Source: Rhodosorus marinus CCMP1338 (lineage: Eukaryota > Plantae > Rhodophyta). Taken from it: a stretch of DNA of 64,000 nucleotides. A program made the translations under genes and the position numbers. This document shows, one piece after another, positions 17,427 through 44,086 of the stretch (position 1 is the first letter of the stretch; each line of letters starts with the position of its first letter). Below the pieces are notes generated by a model. That model was not told the origin of the DNA. It saw only the letters and a program-made list of their open reading frames with translations, and ran no database searches. The stretch covers positions 558,001-622,000 of the forward strand of contig JAMWBK010000005.1 in NCBI GenBank assembly GCA_029953675.1, written 5' to 3'.

Positions 17427-19263
17427 TCAAGCAGCCACTTCGAACAGACTCTTCATCGAGGAATGCGTCTGACCTTCATAGACCCCATCCTCAATACCTG
17501 CAAGGCCAAAGTCTGCTTGGAACGCGAGCAGCGCTTCCTCAGTGTGCGGGCCGAACTGAGTCTGCTCGATAGTTCCCAAGTAGTTGAGGTTGAGGTAGCC
17601 CAAATTCGCCAAGCAGCGGTGGAGCTGCTCAACGTGGTTCCCTTGATCGCCTCGGCGCAGAGGGTGCTGTGGTACGGACGACTGCTGCATTGGAGCCGGC
17701 TCGGTCGCGGTAGGAGCGGCCGAGAAGTGCTGGTTCCAACTAGTCGAACCTTCTCGCGGCCCAGTTTCGTCCTCACCGAAGCCGGAGTACTCTCCCATAC
17801 GGGCAGTCACGGTCCTTAGTAGCGCGCGAATAGCGCTCTCCTGAATAATGAGCTCTGCCGCCGATCCAATCACACCGGCCACTTCTTGAGAGACTAGACC
17901 TTCCACGCTACGTCGTACGTCGGCGGAAAACTGGCGAGACTGCTCCGGCGTTGGCGCTACCGAGGCATCGCTCCCGACCGCACAGTTTACAGCCATGGCT
18001 AGCCTAGGCAGAATTGTCGGCAATGACATTGCCAGCATTGGAAGTTGACCTGTACAGTACCGTTGAATCAGCACACCCATCCTTTAGGCGGACGAAGCAA
18101 GATGGATATCTCTTCTTACCTGAACGTTGTACTGCTGCAGCCGCCTGGGAAATCGCGGCCTGGGCGCCCGGGGACAAGGTTTCCAAATTGCCCATAAGGC
18201 TCTCAATGCCATCGAGATTAAAATTTCCGTCATTGAATCCTGAAAAAGGGCTCGACCATAAGAATGAGCTGAGGGTTACGGGTCGCATGCAGTGGTGGGG
18301 TGGTGGGGCAAGATTCTAGCTTACCAGAGAAGCTATCGCCGAAGTTGAATTGTCCGAGCGGGAACTGGGGGGCCTGTCCGGGATAACTGGAGAATGGATA
18401 GCCGCCCCTAGAGCCTTGATAAGACCTGGCTCGAGGCTCAGTTCCGGGCTCGGTATGTGGCGGAGGCGGGGCCTGTGAAGGTGGGTGTGGTGGTCCAGTT
18501 GGTGGTGGTGGCGGCTCGTGCGGTGGCCCCGATGGTGATGGCGGCGCGTGCGGTGGTGTATGCATGTGTCCTGGTGGCGGCGCGTGCGGTGGTGCGTGCA
18601 TGTGTCCCGATGGCGGTCCATGCGGTGGTGCGTGCATGTGTCCCGATGGCGGTCCCTCCGGTGGCGGTCCATGCGGTGGTTCGTGCATGTGCCCTGGTGG
18701 CGGCCCATGCGGTGGTGCGTGCATGTGCCCTGGTGGCGGCCCATGCGGTGGTGCGTGCATGTGCCCTGGTGGCGGCCCATGCGGCGGTGCGTGCATGTGC
18801 CCCGGTGGCGTCCCATGCGGCGGTGGTCCCCCAGCTCGCTGTTGAACAGGAGCGGGCTTCGGCGGAGGGCCAGCCTTCACATTACCAGCGGAAGCTTCAG
18901 GGTGAGGTCCTTAGCACATGAAACATAGAGCCAATTAGCAAGAGAAAAGACATCAATTCGAAGCTGCCTTATAGGGTATAGTCAGACGGTCTTTCGCTTA
19001 CCCGTATTCCCAGCTTTCCGGACGCTCAACTTCAGGAGACTGGCTCCAGACGACTCCAAAAGCACCAGCGCTTCCTCCAATTCCGAATCCAGCTCGAGAG
19101 TGATGAGATCACCATCATCATCCTTGTACTTCATACCAAATCCCCCTTCCTCCAGGTTGTAGGTCTTCCGAATCTGAGACTGAAGATCCGCGACTCCATC
19201 AACCCGCACGCTGAACCGACGAATATCTCCGTCAAGCTCGCACTTAACCTTCAAATCCTTCAT
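17427..19263 (-). CDS. PB1 domain + His/Pro/Met-rich repeat + C-terminal peptidoglycan-binding-like (PG_binding_1) domain protein, 4 exons
   Basis: Exon 1 is a PB1 domain with the basic Lys (KVKCEL..DIRRF) and the acidic OPCA motif (KYKDDDGDLITLELDSELEEAL). The C-terminal LRRGDQGNHVEQLHRCLANLGY...FGPHTEEALLAFQADFGL...DGVYEGQT fits the PGBD pattern. GT donors at ..AATACGG|GTAAG, ..CTCTG|GTAAG and ..GTTCAG|GTAAG. Confidence 0.85.
18545..18830 (-). repeat. Coding minisatellite, 36-bp unit x7 (GHMHAPPHGPPP)
   Basis: GCATGTG recurs about every 36 bp (one 51-bp spacing) between ~18560 and ~18800. Confidence 0.95.
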
Positions 19264-29100: not shown

Positions 29101-31728
29101 ATGGGTTTCGTGTTTGCTGGTTCTGTTCGCTACGACGTTTCTGAACGAGGTTTTCGATGCGTTCAGTCGATATCTGAAGGAAGGTGGAGGTGTGGAAAGC
29201 CGGTGTTGTTTGCACACAAGTCGAGGTTCGTATTCAACCTCTTTCATTTGTCGTGTTTTTCTTACTAGTCTTTAGCCGGCTTTTTTTCTGATCTTTTTTT
29301 CTGGTTGTCGTCCATGTCCACAGAAGCGAGAGTGACAGAAACTCGGAGGCACACCATGGCAGGCGCAGCAGGAGAGATTCCGAGGTTGGCGGTAATGATT
29401 TGAACCTTGAGGCACTCACAAGCGAGCTGCACGCGTTGGGGCCCAGGGCACGAAGTGATGTTGTACTTTACAAGAGGTTTCATCACGCGATTGAGGTAGG
29501 GGATAAGGCGGAAAACTCTGAACTTGCCTTTTCAAAATTTATATCAACGAGAGTTTCGTCATTAGCACTATGGCAGTCAAGGCTAGAGCGTCGGACTCGA
29601 AAAGACTGAAATCCCTAGAATGAATGTCCGTTATCAGGTCTGCTTTGCTCGTGGCGCGGTAGCCCAGGCCATGGAAGTTCTCGCTCTGATGGAGTCAAAC
29701 CTGGCATTCGTAAGGAAATCTACTTACGCAGTAGTCGCCAGTCGGCTTGCCAACTTCCAGCAAGTCGAGCTATTGGAAGCAATGCTGACCCGAATGTGGC
29801 AGAGGAGTACGAAAAGCGCATCAACCCTATGATTCCAAAAGAGCAGGAGTCAACTCTAATGACTGAGAGATCCGTTGCGCGCTTTTCTGAATTTCCAGAT
29901 GAAGAAAAATCAATGCCGGATGAGAGAATGTGTGCATTGGCGGTAAACGCGGCTTTCTCCACAAGGCGATCTGACGTTGCCTTGAGAATTCTTGAAGGAA
30001 TGCGTGCCGAAGGTGTTGAGGAGGGGCCTCTGACAGTGTCCGTTATGGCAAAAGGTAAGAAGGAATCGAACGAGAAGAAAGGCTGGGCAAGCTTTGATAT
30101 ACGATAGACTCAGCACCTGGCAATGAAATCGGCAAACTTAGGATACGGGAGGATGAAGCAGCCATCGGCGGTTACAGAGCTCTTGAACAGTGCTCAACAG
30201 AGAAATGTTGATCTAGATATCGTTGCTTGGAATTCAGCCGTGGATGCCTACACGAGATGCGGTCAACTGGACAAAGCACACGAGCTCATTGAAAGTACGT
30301 CCAAGAGGTTGCTTCTGTTTTCATGTTCGTCAAGGGTTTAAATCTAACCAAACGCCGCTCCCAACCTTGTAGAAATGAAAGCTCAGAAGGTCTACCCAAA
30401 TGAAACGACTTTCAATACGCTAATAAAAGGTGCAGGTAGGGCAGGGCGAATAGACTCAGCGTTCGATTACCTCTCGGAGATGCGACGGAATGCGTGCCGT
30501 CCAAATCACGTTACGAAAAATTCGTTGATTGATGCCTGTATGCGTGTTGGGTTATGGGACCGCGCCATAGAAATCCTGGATCAAATGCTAGAAGAAGAAT
30601 CGGAGCGCAAGCTTGCGCTCATTGGGTATACCTCCGTTTGCGCTGGTATGTTATGACTGGGGCATTAGAGTGTCGAAACTCCCGTTCTTTGGAATTTCGG
30701 CCTCAACCCATATGAATTTTCTGCCCGCAGGTCTTGTAAAGTGCGGAAGAGAAACTGATGCTCTCGGGCTGATGAGTGAGATGGAGAGTAGAGGCGTAGA
30801 CCCGGACCCTGTCGCGTACAGTTCCGTCATCAACTCTCTGATTGGTGTTGGGAATATCGACATTGCGTGGAACCTGTTCGACATTGCGATTGAGAGGTTT
30901 GAGGATGATGAGGAAATCTATGCTACGATGGTTGTGGGGCTGTGCAAAACCTGCGAGCCGAAATTTGTTTACCAAGCAGCTGAACTTCTCGAACATGTCG
31001 TACGTATTACTTGCGCTGCATCACACTCTCAACAGACTGAAAAGAGTTAAAGGATGTTTCTTTCTATGATGTGACTTTTGGAACAGGATTCTGTTTCAAC
31101 TCATAATGCAGTGGTTGACGGCTTCGCCAAGATCGGAAGACTAGCAGAAGCCGAGGACTGTATCAAGTTTATGCGCCAACGGCTTGTTGGGCCCAATGTG
31201 GTCACCTATACAGCATTAATCGACGGGTACGGGCGCAGTCGTGATATTGAGAACGGGTTGCGTTTGTTTCGAGAAATGTGTAACGAAGGTATTGCTCCAG
31301 ATCTGATCGCTTTTAATGCCGTCATTGCTTCACTTGTGAGATGCGGAAGTGTAGCCCTTGCCATGCAGTTGTTCGAAGAAATGTGCGCGAGAAAAGGTGC
31401 AATCACACCCGACTTCAAGACGTACTCGGTTCTCGTGCAGGCGCATTTTTACGACGGCTATTTTGAGAAGGGCTGGGAAATTTTCGAGATGATGACCGAT
31501 AGTGGACACAAACCCAATCAGCGGATGCTCGAATCGATTTTGAAGCGGGTTCTACAATCGTCGAAACCGGACAGAGGAACTATATCTCGCTTGCTCGAGG
31601 AGATGACGTCAGCAGGAGTATCGCATGGCACAATGCGCTTCTGGCGGATTCAGGCGAGTAAGACTCTGTCGCGTTGGGAGATCTCTGGAGAGGAGCACGT
31701 CGAGGACAATGGGCGAAACAAGCCGTGA
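29101..31728 (+). CDS. Pentatricopeptide repeat protein, probably plastid-targeted, multi-exon
   Basis: Many canonical PPR motifs (DIVAWNSAVDAYTRCGQLDKA, PNETTFNTLIKGAGRAGRID, PNVVTYTALIDGYGRSRD, PDLIAFNAVIASL, PDFKTYSVLVQAH). The first exon starts MGFVFAGSV at 29101. Confidence 0.92.
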
Positions 31729-31894: not shown

Positions 31895-34800
31895 CTACGT
31901 GGATGTGTTGAGCGCTTCACGCTGATCTTGAATAAGTAGATCGCTTGAGCCACGTGAATTTCGAACCAGGTCAATGCTTGTCGCAATCGAAGCGACCTCC
32001 TCGCAAACCGTCTGAGTTATGAAGAACACGCTGTCCTTCCCCAGCCGTGTGCTGAGGCTGACAAATCGTTCCTTCCCTTCACAGTCAAGATGCAATAGAC
32101 TTTCATCGAAAACGATCGTGTTCATGCGGGGGCTGTCGGCAATAGAAAGTGGTCCAGGTCAGAAGAAGAATGAAGGACAACGAAACAAACGTACAAGTTT
32201 GCAAGGGACTAATTCATACCATCGGCGGTTCTGGATCAAGTGAAGGAATCCAAGCGAAAACGAAAGTGAGATCCTATGCCTTTGCCCTCCGCTTAACTGC
32301 CTGAGCGTCCTTCTCACGTACTCCCGATTATCGTTTTGAGTTAGTATGATCTTCTCGATCTTCTCTACACCAGATTCACTGGCCTTCGTCTCCCTACTCG
32401 GTGACAGTTCCAGCTTCAACGTTCCATCCGAGATCTCGTCCAAGTACCTAACGGAGGTGGCTTGAAGATCAGCATCCTGATATCGAAACTTGCAAAAAGC
32501 AGTTTCCCGAGACGAATGCTCTCGTACTCTTGGCATGAGAGCTCCAGTTCACGCAATGCGTTTTCGATGACAAAATTTTGACATCCAGTCGCGCTGAAGC
32601 ACTCCTCCAGTTCCTCATAGGACAACGCATCGCGATTCAAACACGATGTTGTCTCGTCTAGTTCCAGCCGACGCTTCTCCGTCTGCGCCAGAGCCTCCTG
32701 CAGAGTCTCAAATTCCCTCTGCTTCTTCTTCAGCTCTTCACGATACTTGCCGAGCTCACTGTCCAACTCCTTGTCTCGATGTTCCAGCTGCATCATCTGC
32801 GGTCATGAATCAACGCAATTGCCATGTGCACTTAGCCTGGAGCATGCATCATAGCGACGTCAGGAATTCATCATTCTCACCTGCATGGACACTTCAGCAT
32901 GCTCGGATCTCTTGCTTCTCGCCTGTTCAAGCTCAGCTCGTAAACGATCGTACTCGGCCCTCCAGCTTTCACCTTCCTTTTGCAGCGATGTGAGATGATT
33001 GCTAAGGTTGAACACGTCCAGGCTCGACCGTTCAGACATGGTTTCTCCTTGCACGGCGCAGAGCTTCGTCAAAGTCGTAAAATTCATGTCCTCATAAGCC
33101 TGGAGTACGTGTGGAAGCCATATTAAGATTAAAAACTATGTAAGACACGGTTCCGCAAGTCCATTTGTATTGGTGCTGTTCGCTGTGCAACTGCTTACGT
33201 CCATTGGGAGCTGAAAATTGTGAACAAGCAGTTCTGCATGAGGGTTGCGCTCCCGACGAGAAATTTCGATCTTGCGGAACGTCTCTCCTCGAAGAACTTG
33301 TTCAGACTCTATGTTCGTCAGTTCCTTCTGAAGTTGTCTTTCCTGCTCGATCAGTTGCTTCATGTTCTCAGAATTACGTCTGTTATACTCTGCCTCAACT
33401 CCTTCCAGCTCGCTAGACAGCCTTTGTATTCTGGATAAGAGATCTTGTGTTGTTCTTGATCCGGCTTCCATATCCAACTTCACACGTTCAAGTTCCTTAA
33501 CGACAGCTTCTCTAACTCACGAAGAGACCAAACCTCTCAGTCATCTTCGCGATGCGAAGTGACATGGAAACGGGTGTGCAGAGCGCTTACCTCTGGCGCA
33601 AAAAGGTCTCAGCATCAACAGGTTGCAAGCACTTGTCACATGTGCCTTTCAATCCATCAGCAGTTTCTACAAAGTCCGGTCTTTGCATGGTCGACTGAAG
33701 TCTCGCCGAAAGGGCATCGTGATGTGCCCGCTGCGCAAAAAACAAGTTTCGAGCTGATTTGCGGTCCCTTTCCAGCGACTCCACCGCTCGTCGCAATTCG
33801 ACTGCTCTTTCCTCGTTGCCTGGACAATAAAGCGCAAGTATAGACTTAGTGAAAACTTGGCAGGTAAGAGGTTTCACCTTAGACCGCATCACACTTACAA
33901 AAATGCCCCTTGTGCTGCATGTGGGTATCCAGCCTGGCACGAACAGATTCAAGCTCCGCACACAGCTTGTCAGAGTCCAACTCGATAGAATTCATTGTGC
34001 GAAGTTCGTCGCGATATTTTTCAATCTTCATGATTCGGTTCTCCTCCCAATCCTTTCCTCGCTCCATGAGAGTCTCTCCGGTGCGGACCTTGCAAACAGA
34101 GCCCACGCGGTGCATCTGGTTAGATGGGTAGTCCCCGGAACGCATGAACAAGGTCTCCCTTCTTACCAGGTCTTGGAACCGTCTGAGCTCATTCTTCGCT
34201 GCTTCTAAAGCGACCTTTGCTCTTGTCAGTCTCTGATCGTGCTCTCGGAGCTTCTCCTCGATCTCAGAGACAGCGCTTTTGTGTTCCTCTACTCGTCTCC
34301 CGTGGTCCTCAGCTTCCTCAACCAGTTTCAGGATCATTGATCGCTCTGCCGCTAATTCACGCCTCGATACAGATACACGCGCACTGGCTTCATCGTACCT
34401 CCTGTTCTCGTTGGTAAGAAACGTTTGAAGACGGATAAGGCAATCAGACGGGCAAGCTCGCTGAAAGATCAGGAGTCGATCCATGAAAGCCACTTACGAC
34501 TGTTCTTCTTCGAAACTTGCCCTTGCATCTTCTAGAAGCGTTTTCTGGCTTGGAATTGCTGCCTGGAGGTGCTCCAAGACCGCTAGCTTTCTCTCGAATT
34601 CAAGACGAGCGTCTTTCTTCATTTTGTTGCAAATCCCTCTCAGCTCGCGCCATCTGAAAATGGGTCAACTCTGATTCCTCAGATGCCAGCAGGAACGTGT
34701 TGCAAACACTGTGGGACAACGTACCTCTCCAGCGGTACAATTCGCGCTATTTCATCCTTCAAGGCCTTGTCCGTCAACTCCAAAGCGCTTCGAGTAGCAA

Positions 34801-37320
34801 GATTTTGCCCAAAGTAAAACGTCCTTGAAAGCAGCGATGCACCGAGCAGCGATTCGAGTACTGCTTGAGTGTCATCTCTCGTTTGCCTCGTCAAATTTTC
34901 GCCCTACGGGAAGAAACGCTCTTTGTTACTTCAAGCTGGGATAGAAACTGCAACCGCATGGATTGGATTTCGAGTTGAACGACGTACATCGAGGATCACT
35001 TCTAGGGAAGACTCTATACGGCGCCCCTTTCGCCTGAGACTCCGTCTTACTCGAAAATTTCTTCCATCCAGCATCCCTTCAACCTATCGCATGATAGCGG
35101 GGCCCTCAAACGACAAAGCCTAGAATTCGAGTTTATACACGTTCTTAAACTCACCTGTACAAAGCCATTCTCGCTATTGTCATTAAGCATCTCTGTGCTT
35201 AGGCCAGTGACCCTCGTCCCATCCGGTCGAATATCAGTAAACCCAGTTAAGCACCAGAGCGGTGCGACCATCATCGTCGTTTTGCCAGCGGCATTACTAC
35301 TCAAGCCGGTGCTGCTAGAGTTCTCTCCAACGACAAGGACTACCCCCCGATTGTTGGCAGGGTAAGATACCTGGGGATACAGTGATGACAACAACCCAAA
35401 ATTGCGATTAAGATCGTAATCGATCCGTTATCTGAAAGATTTTTCAACAGTCCTAAACACTGACCAACTTCTCGAAGGATCCAAACCCTTGAAAGCTAAC
35501 TGTGACCAACTCCAGTCTAGAGCTTTGTCGACCCTCTGCAGGAACGACGTCGGAGTCGCTGTTCAAGTAGTCACCTATGATCCTCAACCCGCTTGAGACG
35601 ATCTCCTTGGAGCAACCTGGCAAGCAAGAGCGGAGACCATTCATCTTCCTGGATGGCGAGTCTGTCTCCAAGCTACCAGTTCGCATACCTTTGATATCTG
35701 CGTACTTTTTGAACACCCGCTCAAGCGATAGTGACTCTGCATTCTCAATGCGTGCTTTGCTGGTCGGCTTGGGCTTCCTCTTCAGCTGTAGCTTCGCGCC
35801 CTTTTTCACTACCTTTCTCACAATCGATTCCACGTCGTCATGTCCTGTCGACTGCAACTCCAAGGCCAGGAGATCGTTGGCACGGAGCAAGTCTTTCCAA
35901 TGACGAGACAGTTACAACTCGACACCGTCAGCTAAAAACGAACAGTTTCTCGAACGAGGATCCATTGAAATCATTCAATAGATCTGGACACGGTCATTTC
36001 ACCTATGGTCTTTTCAAGATGATCCATCGACTTGAGCCGGAAATGCCTCGGGCCAAAGTCTATAGGTATCTCCTGCTGTACAGTCCATTGACTATCCAAA
36101 ACGAGAAGTGCCTTGCTTTGGCCAGCCTCCGACAACGAAACTTGGTATGGTGAACCGAGGTATCTAATTCTTGTTCCAGGAATAGTCTGTGGTTTGTGAA
36201 AATGACCCGAATAGACCACCGCGTCTCGATGGAAAAGCCTATTAGGCTTTGCTCCCAATACTGAAACATGTCCTGGAGGAAAGTAGAACGGCATTGAAAC
36301 CCTGGCCTCAGTTACACATGTTCGCACCTGTGGGGACGGATAATTTCGCCTCTGGAAGTGACATTTTAGATCGTACCGTTCTTCATGTCTGCCCCGTATA
36401 CGTCGATATGGCAGAAGATGGCCTTGGCGTTGGCTGCTTGCTCTGAACCCAATGCCTTGCGAAGCTCAGCTTCGTTCCTCCTAAACGGCAGCCAGAGGGC
36501 ATCGAGAAAGAGCGTTGGTCTGGATAATACCATTACGCGGTCCTCACCCGCAGCCAACGCAATAGGTTCCAGCGCATTGAGTTCGCCATCGAACGAGACT
36601 TGGTCATGGTTGCCGCTGATCATAATCATTGGCTGGAAGTTTTAGAAGGTTCGCCAACGTAAGCTTTGACAGGGTTGAAGCGTCCATGACGATCTATGGA
36701 AGTGAACGCGTGTCTATTCTGTACCTGTGTCCATCGTGAGAATTCCTCCAAGATCAAGTTGAGAGGTTCTACCGGCAGATCCCCCCTGGAGTGCCAAAAA
36801 TCACCAAGAAACACAACGCCTGCTTCACGGCGGAGGGCTTGCTCGTGGACGTATCTCAGCACTTGAAGACACGTTTGGATTGTAGATCTCCGGACGTGAA
36901 GGTCTGTGAACGCGATCCATTCTCTGCAGTTTTTGAAACTCTCCGGGCATGTATCGATGACGTCGACACTTGAATCACCGTCTAGTGCGGCAGCCGAGTG
37001 CCATACCACAAATTTGCAACAAAATAGTTAGCTTGTTTTGGAACGACACGAATCCCAGCCGTATGAGCTTCTTGATCAAAAACCAGCGCTGTTCTGAACC
37101 CACCTTGAAACGGGTGCTGTGTCGCATTCCCGGTTTCCTTCGGGATACCCTCTCCCAGATCTGGTCCATGGCCATCTTTCTCGGTTACGGGGACCTTGGA
37201 AGCGACGATCCCACTTCGGGATCTCCTAACCTCGTTCTGGGCCTTCCTCAACCGATCCTTTCTCACAAACGTTGGACATCCGAACCCGATCCATGGAGCC
37301 AGAACGAAGCCAGCGACCAT
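31895..37320 (-). CDS. Single-chain SbcD-SbcC (Mre11/Rad50-like) nuclease-ATPase fusion with N-terminal organelle presequence, many exons
   Basis: Phosphoesterase motifs FTDLH, FLGDFWH, ISGNHDQ, CHIDV, YSGHFHKPQ and YLGSPYQ. These are followed by LELVTVSFQGFGSF, extended Walker A GENSSSTGLSSNAAGKTT, coiled coil, zinc hook CDKC (~33629-33640), coiled coil, signature LSGGQ and Walker B/D-loop IVFDESLLHLD. N-terminus MVAGFVLAPW. Confidence 0.9.
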
Positions 37321-39527: not shown

Positions 39528-42278
39528 TGAGATGTGTCTGCGCGACTTGATTCAGTGCTTTGAAGACCGAAAAGCGCGAAAACACGAAACATGCCCGTTC
39601 TCATATTCTCAGGCCCTTGCGTGCGCTCTCAATCTAGAACGTGCCAGCGACTGTTCCAGGTCGCAAGGGGGTGCAAGGAGCAACTGCCTGTGGCTGGGAC
39701 CTAAGTTGTGACCTCTAGCGGAATGAGAACTCAACAGGCTAGAGGTCTTGAAACGACAATTTGGGGCTGTTCTGTGGGAGTTTGACAGAGACTCTTTGCT
39801 GATAGTTTGTACGCCGATCGTCTGTATGAGTATCTCGCCAGCCTCATCGGCCGTCGCCACGGAAATTAGACCAAAAAAACAAAAGAGCCAGAAGAGCGAA
39901 GCTTGACGAGGAGCGGCTCTTCTCCGGCATGTCTTAACCATCAAAAAGGCCTAGCCATTCACTGGCGATGTCGACTGGGTATTCACTCGGTTTACCAAAG
40001 TGTGCCGCGGGAGGTGTATAAAGAAATCCGTGGAGATCACGCGCCAGAAACGAAGAGCATACAAAGTCATCCGTATATGGCACGGTACACAGGTTCTCCA
40101 TCCCAGAAGACCAAAAAATACCGACCCCCGTCAATCCCTCTCCTCAAATAGACTGGAAGAGAAAATCAACAACGAAACATAAGCACATCAAATGGCCAAA
40201 CAAATTTTCTTCTGCTAATTGAATAACGAACGCAACGAGAACGACCGCGTTTAAGAAAGAAAATTCTCACTTTCGTCCTTGATACGCAAATTCATCCCTA
40301 AAGCAAGAACCATTTCTTATGAAAACTACTTTAAATTCATATATAATTCAAATACGTTTGGTCTTCGGCGTATATTCCCAAAAGTAAATAAAAACGAAGC
40401 CTGCTAGAGCTTTTCCCCTCATTTTTAAGAATAAAAAACGTATAGTTCTAAATATGATGGATTTTAATGGAAGGAAAGAATAGTATTTGTTGAATTTATA
40501 GGCTCGGGAATTCGCTTCTTGGTTTTTACAATCAGTGAAACTGTATTTATTCGAATTGTTTTTATTAGTTTAAAAATACGGTGGGTTGTATAGTAAATAC
40601 AATGAAGAGATATCTTGTCGTGACGAAATCCGACTTTTTTATTCCAATATATTGTATATACCCACTAGATTTTTTTACCGCAGTGGTTCGAAACCACCTA
40701 ACTTTGAAGGAACTAAGAAATAATTTTTAAAATAAAGCTGTTCTGAAATTCTTTCGCTTGTCACATAGCAGGGGTGGTAGGTAAGAATAGTCTCGACTTC
40801 TATCTCCAAGTGTAGATCGTCCAGTTCCTCATTTTTTTTGTCTATTCTTATTCCGATTCTCTTTTCTTGACCCGTTGCAAAGTCTTTGCTTTAGTTTTAG
40901 AAAATTTCAACTTTTCTTATATACGAATCTACGGCCAGGCATTGGAGTCTAAGGAGGCGGGGGGGGGTGTTGCCCCAGAGAATAGCTATAGAAAACTATA
41001 CCCCAGGTGTGGAAGACCTTGGTTTTGCGCTAGAATACAAAAAAAGAAATTTAATGACAGAAGAGGAAATCTATTTTCGCTTGCCAGGGGTATAAATGCG
41101 GACAATAATGAAAAACAAATAGAGGGGTGATTTTCTATACTAGATGGATTCTCCTTTTTCAGTTGTGGTGACAAGCAGAGCAGATCACATGCTCCCGAAA
41201 AAGAAGAAGAAAACGAACCACATATCCGAGGATTTGGCAAAATGGCAACAGGAAGCATAAGATTAAATGACCCATCCGGAACAACGGGGGGGGTATAAAA
41301 ATCACAAAACACGTTAATCCGCAGTAATATACCATTTTTCGAAAGTTAGGTGAGAATGTTGGATGTCTTAGGGGGGTAGAATCTGGCAAAATATCGAGCT
41401 CTTTTTTCCATGATTGGGTGAAAATGATACCGCAGAAAGGCTGGAGGATTTCTGTGAGACTCCGTAGGGGGGAGGAACGGATGCTACCTGAAATTGCATG
41501 AAGAGATTCTTACCTGGGAAACAGTTGGAATTGTTTTGAATCATGGAGTGTCCTACGTCAAGGGCTTGTTCAGTAGAACAGTTCCCGAGGGAAGGGGGGG
41601 GTGGTTTACAAGGGTTGATTGAAATAGTGTCTGTTTTCAAGATGCTGACGTTGTTTGAGAAGAGGCGAGAGGGGTGGGGGTGAAGAGTGGTATGAGGATA
41701 GTCACATATGGGAAGGATCTAAGGTTTTCGGACAGAACAAGGATAGAAGGTGGTCGTGGCCGTTGAAAAATTTTGTGAGCTCTGATAAAATGAATTGTCT
41801 TTATCTAGGAAGTGGATGGGGAAAAGTTGGGTGGAGATGACCTAGGTTGAAAGGGACGGGGAAGGGGGGGTTGGTGAAACTGGCCGCGGGTTGGAAGAAT
41901 GGGATTTTGTTCGGTCCAGGGAGGAGGAGGACAAAAAGGATTTTTTTAGGGTAAAGGCAGGTTGTTGTCAACTGGGTCTTTTTCTCTTGGAGGGGGGGGG
42001 GGGAAGGGAGGGTGGGTAAGACAGCTGAGCGGCATTGTAAGTGTTTGGTTGTTTTGCGTGAGCGGTTTGTCTGGTTTTGGTTTTGTTGTTTTTTTTGCAA
42101 TCTTTTTTGTGGCCCAATGACACGAGGATGGTTTCTGCAGGATAGGATTTGAGGAGCCTGGGATGGAGTTTTAGCTAAAGGACTGGTTGACTGGGAGAAA
42201 ACAAAAAACCAGAAAAGGAAGGGATTTGTGTTTGCTTTTTTTTCCTTCTGGTGGAGTACGGAGGAGGAGGGGGGGAGT

Positions 42279-44086
42279 ATGGCTAGACGCTTGGGGACAA
42301 TCGCTTTTGGCGAGGACGAAAGGGAAGCTGCGGACGAGTTTGTACAGGCTTTGACGACGGACTCCCAGACGGAGTCAGTAGCGGAGACAGAAGGCGAGGA
42401 CGAATCTGGGGAGGAAGAACAGGCCCCAAGCAGAGATCAGGACTCTGAGGACGAACTTATTCCTGCGGCGCAGGTGTTGATGCTCCCTCCGGCAGATCAC
42501 TCTGGAATTGAGTCAACTATGCAGAACATCTTCTCGCTGGTACACTCTGGCATTGATTCGTTTACCAGCAGCTATGCATCGTCAGCTCTCGGGAATGAGG
42601 GAGTGATCTCGCAGCTGAAGAGACGCAAGTTCCTGGTCAGCAAGCAGGTCGAGGAGTCTTTTCGTACCTGTCCCCGTGACGTCTTCGTTCCAGACTCGCA
42701 GAAGGCAGTCTCTTATGACATGTCACCGTTGAGATTGACCGAGTACGAGTTCAACATTTCTGCTCCAGATGTGTATGCTAATGCGCTCGAGGTTCTAGAA
42801 TTTAAGGAGGGCGACAGGTTCCTTGATATTGGAAGTGGCTGCGGGCAGCTTACGGCTATGGGGGCAGTGCTCTGTGGGAAGACTGGCAGCGCTCTTGGAA
42901 TCGACTTGAGCGAGAAGACTGTCAGCTTTGCGAGGTCGAACGTTGAGAAGCTTAAAGTCGAAAGCCCGAGATTCGTTGAGAAGGCCTGTGATGTCGAGTT
43001 CATGATTGCCAACGTGTTCCTCCTGGACGTGGAGTCGCTGCCATCGAAGGACAATGACGGACGATTTGATAAGATTCACTGTGGTGCTAGCTGCCCGCCT
43101 AGTCGGCTAAATGCTCTTGTCGCATTACTTCGACCTGGTATGTGTCATGGGTCCCAGCGACGCTTTTCAAAATAGCATTTATCTGACAAATTCTGTACTT
43201 GTGCAGGTGGAAGTCTTGTTACTCCTTGTGGAAAGGTCATGCTCTTGACGAAGAAGCATATGAACGGATCAACGACTCAGAAGAATGTCGCAGCGGTAAT
43301 ATACGGACCGCTGATTGTTCCGAGCGATCTAGAGGTTATAATGCACATGTATAGGCTCTCCATTGGGAAGGCTTCTCGTCTGGAGGGGCATGAGACCATG
43401 ATAGAAGCTGACCTGAACGGCATGGTGGCAGTCGAGGAAGTAAGGGATTTGTTCATGAGCCATGAGGGCAGCGACTTCACTTTTGTCGTTGAAGAGAACG
43501 GAATGGAGTACAAAATTCCAGCCCACAAGGCTATCCTGTCCTCTAGGTCGGGGCATTTTCGTGCCCTGTTCAATTCCAATATGAAAGACTGTGTCTGTGC
43601 GAGCACCACACCCCCAGAAGAGTACAGCAAGGCAGACCTGATAGAGTGTCTGCGATACATGTACACTGAGACGGTGAGTCCTAGAAAACGTTACCTTTTA
43701 CAATGGATGTTTTGGCCAGAGTTATTCCTCATTCGTCGTGTTCAATGCTTTAGGCTAACGTTAAGGTGGAAAACTGCGTGCAGCTGCTACGCCTGTCAAA
43801 GTTTTACGATGTGTCCGCGGGAATCTTTCGACTGTGCGAAGAGGTATTGTACTCCAGCCTGGACACGTCAAATGCAGCTAGTATTCTTCACTTGAGTAAT
43901 TGGTACTCTTGTGAAAGCCTGAAGAACTGTACCACACAGTTCATACTGGACAACCTGGATGAAGTTCGTCGTTCGGAAGATTGGAGTCACCTCGATCGCG
44001 ATGTCGTCGAGGACGTTCTGATAGAGTCCTCGAAACGGAACCACATGATCACTCACCTAATAAACTCTTTTAGCCAGAGTACATGA
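42279..44086 (+). CDS. Protein-L-isoaspartate O-methyltransferase-like (PCMT/PCMTD) domain fused to a BTB/POZ (+BACK-like) domain, 3 exons
   Basis: FRTCPRDVFVP, NISAPDVYANALEVL, FLDIGSGCG (SAM motif I), FDKIHCGAS, LLRPG|GSLVTP and YGPL. These continue into SDFTFVVE...IPAHKAILSSRSGHFRALFNSNMKD...LRYMYT (BTB) and NCVQLLRLSKFYDV...LDTSNAASIL...LKNCTTQFILDNL. Confidence 0.9.

Follow-up and report, generated by a model that had tools for sequence, protein, structure and literature searches.

Background

Does a red alga encode both halves of an SbcCD- or Mre11-Rad50-type DNA repair machine, the nuclease and the ATPase, in a single nuclear gene, and if so, where did that gene come from and in which compartment does its product act? 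These questions are raised by a locus of Rhodosorus marinus CCMP1338, situated in a stretch of 64,000 nt (GenBank assembly GCA_029953675.1, contig JAMWBK010000005.1, positions 558,001 to 622,000), which is the window analysed here. The gene lies on the minus strand of the window, with its ATG at position 37320 and a stop codon that ends at 31895. An original prediction, made from the sequence without database searches, described it as an organelle-targeted single-polypeptide SbcD-SbcC fusion. The best explanation, to which we assign a probability of roughly 0.6, is that it is an intact nuclear red-algal gene for a single-chain Mre11-Rad50-type machine of phage lineage, which would act in the plastid.

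Fusions of Mre11 and Rad50 were described by Yoshida, Claverie and Ogata in 2011 (Virol J 8:427, PMC3175470) in Mimivirus R555, one phage, plasmids, some bacteria and six eukaryotes; a supported 'moss-diatom-prasinophyte group' is formed by four of the eukaryotes. In that study the fusions fall outside all canonical clades, and the fusion hosts examined also keep separate canonical MRE11 and RAD50 genes. The distribution is called sporadic, lateral transfer by viruses is favoured, and plastids or organelles are never mentioned. The family has been without bench study since this description.

Results and Discussion

One spliced frame for nuclease and ATPase

Six-frame reading places the open segments of the gene in all three minus frames, in the order calcineurin-like nuclease motifs, N-lobe of an ATP-binding cassette (ABC) ATPase, long low-complexity helical sequence, CxxC, and ABC ATPase C-lobe. 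The start codon is the first in-frame ATG downstream of an upstream stop. An initial model of 16 exons, joined at canonical GT-AG sites, was refined by comparison with the best database match, P0001, to 17 exons and 16 canonical GT-AG introns of 71-122 nt, encoding 1333 aa with no internal stop (Table 1). P0001 is a protein of 761 aa predicted from Rhodosorus marinus transcriptomes (1408 bits; Metallophos and AAA_23 domains). It aligns with residues 1-752 of the model at 86% identity with 0 gaps, spans the nuclease, the linker and Walker A, and verifies the first 10 splice junctions, including the one between nuclease and ATPase. A 47-nt intron after residue 667, an acceptor TTTCAG/TA for intron 3 and a good-looking acceptor TTTTTAG at ~35932, which leads into a stop, were all dropped on the strength of this gap-free alignment.

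The fusion depends on the junction at the phase-1 intron 36002-35893. Splicing across it gives ...HLEKTI-D-LLRANDLL, where P0001 reads HLEKTIDSLRANDLL, and the spliced EKTI-D-LLRANDLL agrees with the R. marinus transcript reading EKTIDSLRANDLL. Because P0001 aligns through the junction without a gap, the junction is real, and the intron that the original prediction wrote as ATA G/GT...AAAG/AC TTG is confirmed. The open reading frame (ORF) at 35453-35890 spans the linker on the nuclease side as well as the first ATPase strand, as had been proposed, but it also contains an in-frame, stop-free 72-nt intron (35688-35617) that had been overlooked and whose 24 codons are missing from P0001. The claim of a single polypeptide holds: the spliced frame is intact, and a transcript-derived protein of a close relative spans both halves.

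Motifs and predicted fold

Motifs were located, and their conservation scored, on a family alignment of 30 sequences. All five Mre11/SbcD nuclease motifs (DxH, GDxxH/D, GNHD/E, H and GHxH) are present in the window protein, as D99/H101, GDFWH 132-136, GNHD 165-168, H233 and GHFH 266-269. Within them D99, H101, G132-D133, G165-N166-H167-D168, H233 and G266-H267-x-H269 are invariant in the 30 homologues, and the Pfam Metallophos model scores 30.5 bits against a cut-off of 21.5. Equally invariant are S477, N478, G481 and K482 of Walker A; L1230, S1231, G1232, G1233, D1264, E1265, L1270 and D1271 in the C-lobe; and C896 and C899, whose positions coincide in the alignment with the hooks of E. coli SbcC, T4 gp46 and phage relatives.

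The original prediction placed all nuclease motifs, all ABC-ATPase motifs and a CxxC in this one frame. The nuclease motifs, the CxxC and the other ATPase motifs are indeed there, but the H-loop histidine is not: Gln1295 takes its place, at the alignment position where M. jannaschii Rad50, E. coli SbcC and T4 gp46 have the His. At least 90% of the algal family have Gln at this position, as do the viral relatives L010 and L012; Galdieria has His. The D-loop His (xHLD, H1269) is likewise conserved in at least 90% of the algal family and is also found in the viral loci L007 and L008.

A single-sequence search of solved structures returned marginal SbcD matches only (E ~0.01), so a family profile was needed. 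The profile matched M. jannaschii Rad50 (8.7e-22), T. maritima Rad50 (2.6e-15), SbcC (1.5e-7) and Mre11/SbcD (~5e-7), with no eukaryotic MRE11 among its top 60 matches. Window residues 1-640 were modelled by AlphaFold2 (AF2) with 13 homologues, and the nuclease and capping domain is confident (predicted local distance difference test, pLDDT, of 85-97 for residues 80-375). In Foldseek the best solved structure for this model is E. coli SbcD (2e-14, template modelling score ~0.55-0.6), followed by S. aureus SbcD, the Mre11 proteins of M. jannaschii and P. furiosus and, after these, Rad50 N-lobes; the top 50 include no eukaryotic MRE11.

The full-length fold was taken from a Chloropicon homologue (P0041, 1049 aa, 30% identical, pLDDT 83). 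Its model contains, in one chain, the nuclease, capping domain, helix-loop-helix, N-lobe, two long helices joined by the hook, and C-lobe, and it matches structures of Chaetomium, archaeal, Thermotoga and human Rad50 and of E. coli SbcC and SbcD. The linker helices, at residues 390-401 and 405-420 of the window model and 368-378 and 383-397 of the Chloropicon model, form a predicted helix-loop-helix that appears to occupy the position of the Rad50-binding domain of Mre11.

Phage and viral affinity

By its sequence affinities the protein is of phage type. It matches PHROG 100, an SbcD-like subunit (1.3e-28, 101 bits), and, across the whole ATPase part, PHROG 77, an SbcC-like subunit (1.4e-44, 154 bits). 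Cellular NCBIfam SbcC, SbcD and Rad50 models score at most 28 bits, all far under their cut-offs: the best are SbcD, with 27.8 bits versus a cut-off of 450, and Rad50, with 17 bits versus 1087, and the NCBIfam SbcC models do not match the window protein. On these sub-cut-off scores it is therefore not filed as a canonical SbcCD or Mre11-Rad50. A tblastn search returned 863 phage records at 22-28% identity, mainly from Herelleviridae-type phages of Firmicutes and from cyanophages, in which the nuclease gene lies next to the ATPase gene, in the order of the fusion's domains.

The algal family and most of the viral relatives compared have an insertion in the P-loop, G-x-N-x-D-D-x4-SNGxGK(S/T), which E. 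coli SbcC (ITGPTGAGKTT), T4 gp46 and a Calothrix SbcC lack. The extended P-loop to which the original prediction drew attention is thus real and informative. That prediction also regarded the protein as phage or bacterial rather than nuclear MRE11/RAD50, and the PHROG and NCBIfam scores, the P-loop and the SbcD fold all agree, narrowing the description to phage-type.

Among viral structures, the best matches to the Chloropicon model are single-chain fusions: the recombination exonuclease of Listeria phage LMTA-57 (1e-45) and the mimivirid 'DNA repair exonuclease' of Harvfovirus, Yasminevirus, Tupanvirus, Catovirus and Pyramimonas orientalis virus (1e-36 to 1e-31). These have the same domain order and overall predicted fold as the algal proteins, as does Mimivirus R555, for which the comparison is by description only. 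Identity is 13-18% in the structural alignments, and 22-34% to viral contigs and phage records by tblastn. Unlike the algal genes, the viral fusions have neither an N-terminal presequence nor introns, and the phage forms have shorter coiled coils.

IMG/VR contigs hold two-gene forms as well as fused ORFs. Single ORFs of 987-1111 aa are found on contigs L006, L009, L010, L025 and L053, whereas close relatives on L004, L005, L007, L008, L012, L016 and L028 are two separate genes; because close viral relatives come in both forms, fusion has been gained or undone repeatedly among viruses. Both forms have the extended P-loop and the xHLD D-loop in common with the algal family.

Compared with the two-gene SbcD- and SbcC-like nucleases of phages (T4 gp47 and gp46, Herelleviridae, cyanophages), whose gene order is the domain order of the algal proteins, the fusion shares with many of them the GNHDQ motif, the G-x-N-x-DD-x4-SNGxGKS P-loop, the xHLD D-loop and the CxxC hook. 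The phage nucleases are separate polypeptides, however, most have the H-loop histidine, and T4 gp46 lacks the P-loop insertion. E. coli SbcCD, which supplies the best solved structure for the nuclease, has the same ATPase and hook layout but two subunits, a canonical Walker A and an H-loop His, in contrast to the one chain and Gln1295 of the window protein. Nuclear MRE11-RAD50(-NBS1) belongs to the same superfamily, and the heads of Chaetomium and human RAD50 are recognisably similar, but the coiled coil of the window protein is much shorter.

When 185,579 bacterial and archaeal genomes were scanned for the pattern, at least three weak loci were confirmed among the matches listed, namely the C-termini of Calothrix and Nostoc SbcC and one Rhodobacteraceae nuclease. 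With these loci weak and the Calothrix ORF carrying a canonical P-loop, there is no sign of a cyanobacterial origin among the matches listed.

A clade of photosynthetic eukaryotes

Homologues were surveyed as the best 120 relatives (E below 1e-90), with taxonomy taken from named hits. Every named hit is a photosynthetic eukaryote: the red algae Rhodosorus and Galdieria; the streptophyte algae Chlorokybus, Mesostigma and a third record; liverworts, mosses, many chlorophytes, diatoms, brown algae, Chromera and Euglena. Vascular plants, oomycetes and apicomplexans are absent from the named hits of these 120. E-values to the moss, diatom and prasinophyte fusion members range from 1e-90 to 1e-157.

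In a neighbour-joining (NJ) tree of 45 sequences with 200 bootstraps, rooted on viral contigs, T4 gp47+46 and E. coli SbcD+C as outgroups, the 32 algal sequences form one clade in 200/200 replicates, which excludes the viral contigs, T4 and E. coli. The comparison with SbcC/D and T4 gp46/47 that the original prediction proposed as a check thus sets the algal fusions apart. Within the clade, green sequences group with 138-187/200, and those of diatoms, brown algae, Chromera and Euglena with 193-195/200; no sampled viral group encloses the algal family with support. The tree rests on distances and samples algal, viral, T4 and E. coli sequences; canonical sequences of eukaryotes and archaea are placed according to Yoshida et al. 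(PMC3175470).

The window protein clades (200/200) with Ostreococcus, mosses and liverworts, and diatoms, represented by database members and not by the accessions of the 2011 paper itself. By its sequence it is a red-algal member of the moss-diatom-prasinophyte group, which had none in that paper (PMC3175470). Members of the group have the same single chain, with N-terminal nuclease and C-terminal ATPase; where four such eukaryotes were reported in 2011, the clade now takes in bryophytes, diatoms, brown algae, Chromera, Euglena and algae of the red, streptophyte and chlorophyte lineages. The original prediction was right that such fusions are known from mimivirus R555 and essentially uncharacterised (PMC3175470), but 'sporadic' no longer describes the eukaryotic group, which is one clade across photosynthetic lineages. 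Such a pattern is consistent with a single early gain of the gene and its later spread with plastids.

The Euglena gracilis sequence (P0116) groups with diatoms, brown algae and Chromera at 193-195/200 and shares their extra N-terminal module, described below. Despite the green-origin plastid of its host, it may be a 'red-type' gene in a euglenid.

Introns number 16 in the window gene, 20 in Riccia fluitans (L087) and 3 in Galdieria partita (L088), and almost all are lineage-specific. One Riccia and one Galdieria intron share an alignment column and phase 0. The intron of the window gene after residue 667 (phase 2) lies two columns from a phase-2 intron of Riccia, in a poorly aligned stretch of coiled coil. 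These matches are too few for any firm conclusion on the antiquity of the gene.

Some homologues, namely Elliptochloris P0037, P0015 and P0002 (SM000018S03588, SM000026S08977; 1720-1920 aa), are much longer or carry PF22784, PF22785 or PF03405. They are probably merged gene models, not real fusions.

N-terminal extensions and cellular location

Phage and bacterial SbcD proteins have the DxH motif within ~10 residues of the start and no counterpart of the 90-residue extension of the window protein. Almost every full-length algal member is longer at the N-terminus, by 50-250 residues. In the window protein, residues 1-45 include nine basic and two acidic residues (net charge +7), with Phe at position 5, and residues 1-75 are predicted to be disordered (AF2 pLDDT 22-30). 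Identity to P0001 is 63% in the first 60 residues versus 86% overall. Green members have Arg/Ser/Ala-rich, acid-poor extensions. In at least 12 diatom- or stramenopile-type homologues, a hydrophobic signal peptide, recognised by eye, is followed by [A/S/G]/F, as in ...IIIASS/FQLP, ...VPIASS/FQPS, VTISNS/FHYS and ...VFVTS/FQQALP. A signal peptide followed by Phe is the ASAFAP-type bipartite signal, reportedly used for complex red plastids, and an N-terminal Phe is carried by glaucophyte transit peptides and, reportedly, by those of red algae.

Organellar-type presequences are thus a feature of the algal family that the 2011 paper (PMC3175470), in which organelles are unmentioned, did not bring out. 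The N-termini of the homologues strengthen the proposal of plastid import, which is plausible and still indirect for the window protein; in the red alga a plastid location is likely and a mitochondrial or dual one less so.

Homologues from diatoms, brown algae and Euglena and many metagenomic ones (P0069, P0081, P0076, P0116 and others) have an additional module of ~55 aa between presequence and nuclease, with the pattern W-x-V-GD-x-V...G-x-V-x-E-x-RG-x-GWY-x-V-x-L...K-x-R-x-x-Q-L. It is absent from red and green members and has no Pfam match above threshold, the only weak match being to RsgA_N.

Several observations weigh against an intact phage-lineage machine that acts in the plastid. For the gene model, the junctions of the exons that encode the C-terminal 580 residues are supported by their fit to family consensus motifs only. 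One further in-frame intron is possible in this part, at 34166-34089, where the sequence encodes a Pro/Gly-rich VRRETLFMRSGDYPSNQMHRVGSVCK within the coiled coil and its removal would leave 1307 aa. P0001 departs from the window protein right after ...QDL, at the start of this segment, and ends 15 residues later; because the divergence falls exactly there, the segment may be a seventeenth intron, one retained in the P0001 transcript.

For activity, the H-loop histidine is normally required for fast ATP hydrolysis in ABC ATPases, and since it is Gln here, the kinetics of the ATPase may differ from those of SbcCD. For descent, the position of the red algae in the NJ tree lacks support, and the closest viral sister candidate reaches at most 95/200. 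For location, residues 1-18 are rather hydrophobic (Kyte-Doolittle 1.77), which is atypical for a primary-plastid transit peptide; mitochondrial or dual targeting is a possible alternative. The literature search found nothing on plastid or chloroplast localisation of SbcCD- or Mre11-Rad50-type proteins, and because no paper reporting the fusion family in plastids was found, nothing corroborates the plastid location.

The same enzyme may serve mitochondria, or both organelles, and maintain mitochondrial DNA, a possible but doubtful alternative. The presequence of the window protein is basic and its residues 19-45 could fold as an amphipathic helix; some homologues, such as Nitzschia P0109 and those of several green algae, have N-termini that resemble mitochondrial presequences; and dual targeting is common among plant organellar DNA-maintenance proteins. 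A purely mitochondrial role does not, however, explain why the named hits are restricted to plastid-bearing lineages, or why at least 12 diatom-type homologues carry a signal peptide plus Phe.

That the protein acts in the nucleus or cytosol, as a second processor of DNA breaks or as a nuclease against viral DNA, with the extension as a regulatory tail, is improbable. Its nearest relatives are viral replication and recombination nucleases, and nucleases of the SMC type do defend bacteria, with weak PADLOC matches to DndD, JetC and LmuB. But N-terminal extensions of organellar or bipartite character are found across the family, the phyletic pattern tracks plastids, and the hosts examined already have canonical MRE11/RAD50 (PMC3175470). 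A bacterial anti-phage system of the SMC type (Lamassu, Wadjet or Dnd) was rejected because the PADLOC matches, at no more than 25 bits, reflect generic SMC similarity.

That the gene is recently inserted viral DNA or a pseudogene in decay, with no cellular function, is very unlikely, even though viral relatives are abundant and lateral transfer by viruses was favoured in 2011 (PMC3175470): the neighbours of the gene are ordinary intron-containing nuclear genes (a convergent pentatricopeptide-repeat gene, a divergent saccharopine-dehydrogenase-like gene, and SDR, DEPDC5-like, bHLH and PCMT-BTB genes) and its GC content is in line with that of the rest of the window. The gene itself has 16 spliceosomal introns and an intact frame of 1333 aa with every catalytic residue kept, P0001 is an expressed orthologue at 86% identity, Riccia and Galdieria have one intron position in common, and the algal family is monophyletic (200/200) with green and complex-plastid subclades.

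Equally slight is the chance that two adjacent genes, a nuclease and an ATPase, were misjoined by the model: the joining intron has a weak pyrimidine tract at its acceptor (TTGGAAAG) and phage relatives are often two genes, but P0001 crosses the junction, the exon after it carries linker and first ATPase strand uninterrupted by a stop and lacks any ATG-led restart, and dozens of algae have the full-length protein as a single annotated or assembled sequence, in several cases from transcriptomes.

Annotated features and neighbouring genes

The features of the fusion gene are collected in Table 1. An Rfam search of the window gave no match. A pentatricopeptide-repeat gene (30375-31728, plus strand) is convergent with the nuclease gene at its 3' end, with 166 nt between the two stop codons; members of this family typically act on organellar RNA. 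At 42228-43895 (plus strand) an ORF with a PCMT domain is directly followed by one with a BTB/POZ domain, and the two may be one gene with an unusual domain combination. At 18230-18880 (minus strand) lies an ORF of His/Pro-rich repeats, with ~9 copies of PPHGPPPGHMHA, just upstream of an ORF on the same strand with a putative peptidoglycan-binding domain, PG_binding_1 (17427-18080); these may be exons of one gene.

Table 1. Coordinates, within the 64,000-nt window, of the fused nuclease-ATPase gene and its parts
Feature	Position	Strand	Remarks
Whole coding region	31895..37320	-	17 exons, 1333 aa, stop codon included
Exons 1-6	37320-37104, 36981-36725, 36632-36377, 36272-36003, 35892-35689, 35616-35465	-	
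Exons 7-12	35370-35155, 35083-34988, 34903-34725, 34653-34498, 34401-33899, 33819-33591	-	
Exons 13-17	33511-33199, 33099-32881, 32796-32528, 32447-32220, 32132-31895	-	Stop codon in last
N-terminal extension, residues 1-90, MVAGFVLAPWIGFGCPTFVRKDRLRK...	36929..37320	-	Candidate transit peptide; split by intron 1
Intron 1	37103-36982	-	Interrupts N-terminal extension
SbcD/Mre11-type metallophosphoesterase nuclease and capping domain, residues 91-335	35888..36928	-	Pfam, PHROG, motifs, fold
Nuclease motifs I, II, III, IV, V	36910-36896, 36805-36791, 36614-36603, 36416-36402, 36207-36196	-	
Phase-1 intron, nuclease exon to exon with linker and first ATPase strand	35893..36002	-	110 nt; GTGAAATG...TTGGAAAG
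Linker, residues 336-440	35501..35887	-	Small beta/alpha module, then helix-loop-helix before ATPase (AF2 helices)
ATPase N-lobe, residues 436-640	34581..35515	-	Pfam AAA_23; PHROG 77
First ATPase strand LELVTVSFQGFGSF	35515-35474	-	
Extended P-loop/Walker A GENSSSTGLSSNAAGKTT	35328-35275	-	GEN-x7-SNAAGKTT, residues 467-484
Q-loop GQ (Q589)	34810-34805	-	Q589 nearly invariant
Antiparallel coiled-coil arms, ~residues 641-895 and 900-1149	32617..34580	-	Includes CxxC hook
Possible extra in-frame intron, GTAAGA...TTTGCAAG	34089..34166	-	78 nt, inside coiled-coil exon; uncertain
CxxC zinc hook C896-D-K-C899	33640-33629	-	Zinc role predicted
ATPase C-lobe, residues 1150-1333	31898..32616	-	Pfam SbcC_Walker_B 23 bits, below 27-bit cut-off
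Signature LSGGQ 1230-1234	32296-32282	-	
Walker B IVFDE 1261-1265	32116-32102	-	
D-loop SLLHLD 1266-1271	32101-32084	-	Includes H1269
H-loop position FFITQ	32026-32012	-	Gln1295 for His

Proposed mechanism

We infer the enzymatic activity, oligomeric state, location and biological role of the fusion protein by analogy with E. coli SbcCD, which provides the model of ATP-dependent clamping and cleavage of hairpins and blocked ends, and with archaeal Mre11-Rad50 and T4 gp46/47. From the N-terminus, the chain would consist of a presequence, an SbcD-like Mn-dependent nuclease with its capping domain, a helix-loop-helix tether and an SbcC/Rad50-like ABC ATPase, the lobes of which would be set apart by coiled-coil arms of ~250 residues joined at the CxxC zinc hook. 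Two chains would dimerise through their nuclease domains and, with ATP, through their ATPase heads, and hooks would be joined via zinc. ATP-bound heads would clamp a DNA end or hairpin and pass it to the Mn nuclease site, where 3'-5' exonuclease and endonuclease cuts would open hairpins and clean blocked double-strand ends for RecA-type recombination.

In the plastid, such an activity would help to repair plastid DNA and to replicate it by a recombination-dependent route. Nuclease and ATPase being covalently joined, this link would replace the helix-loop-helix tether as their sole connection, and the change of the H-loop His to Gln would modify the hydrolysis step. As for origin, an ancestor like the viral nuclease-ATPase genes may have entered photosynthetic eukaryotes early and been inherited along with plastids.

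Conclusions

The original prediction holds for the gene and, in large part, for its interpretation. Because the fusion itself was described in 2011, the window adds a red-algal member and its context, not a new kind of system. What goes beyond the earlier description is a coherent plastid-bearing clade with putative organellar presequences and a P-loop insertion common to most of the viral relatives compared, and it is from these features that the family becomes a candidate DNA-end-processing nuclease of plastids.

Plastid genomes rely on homologous recombination for repair and probably also for replication, and for this RecA, Whirly, MSH1, RecG and MOC1-type factors are known; we know of no nuclease for broken or hairpin-capped plastid DNA ends. 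It is tentatively proposed that this missing nuclease is a phage-derived, T4 gp46/47-like machine, acquired once, close to the origin of photosynthetic eukaryotes, and inherited through secondary endosymbioses, that drives recombination-dependent replication and repair of plastid DNA. The family may have been lost in vascular plants, none of which is among the best 120 hits.

As a direct candidate for the plastid DNA-end nuclease in red, green and secondary-plastid algae and in bryophytes, the family can be approached in Physcomitrium, Marchantia, Chlamydomonas, Phaeodactylum and Cyanidioschyzon, and a natural single-chain version could suit structural work on the Mre11-Rad50 cycle. If the proposal is true, the family-wide change of the H-loop His to Gln together with the conserved D-loop His would mark an altered ATPase cycle. 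The family would then be another virus-like module of DNA metabolism recruited for an organelle, joining phage-type parts such as the T7-like RNA polymerase and the Twinkle primase-helicase.

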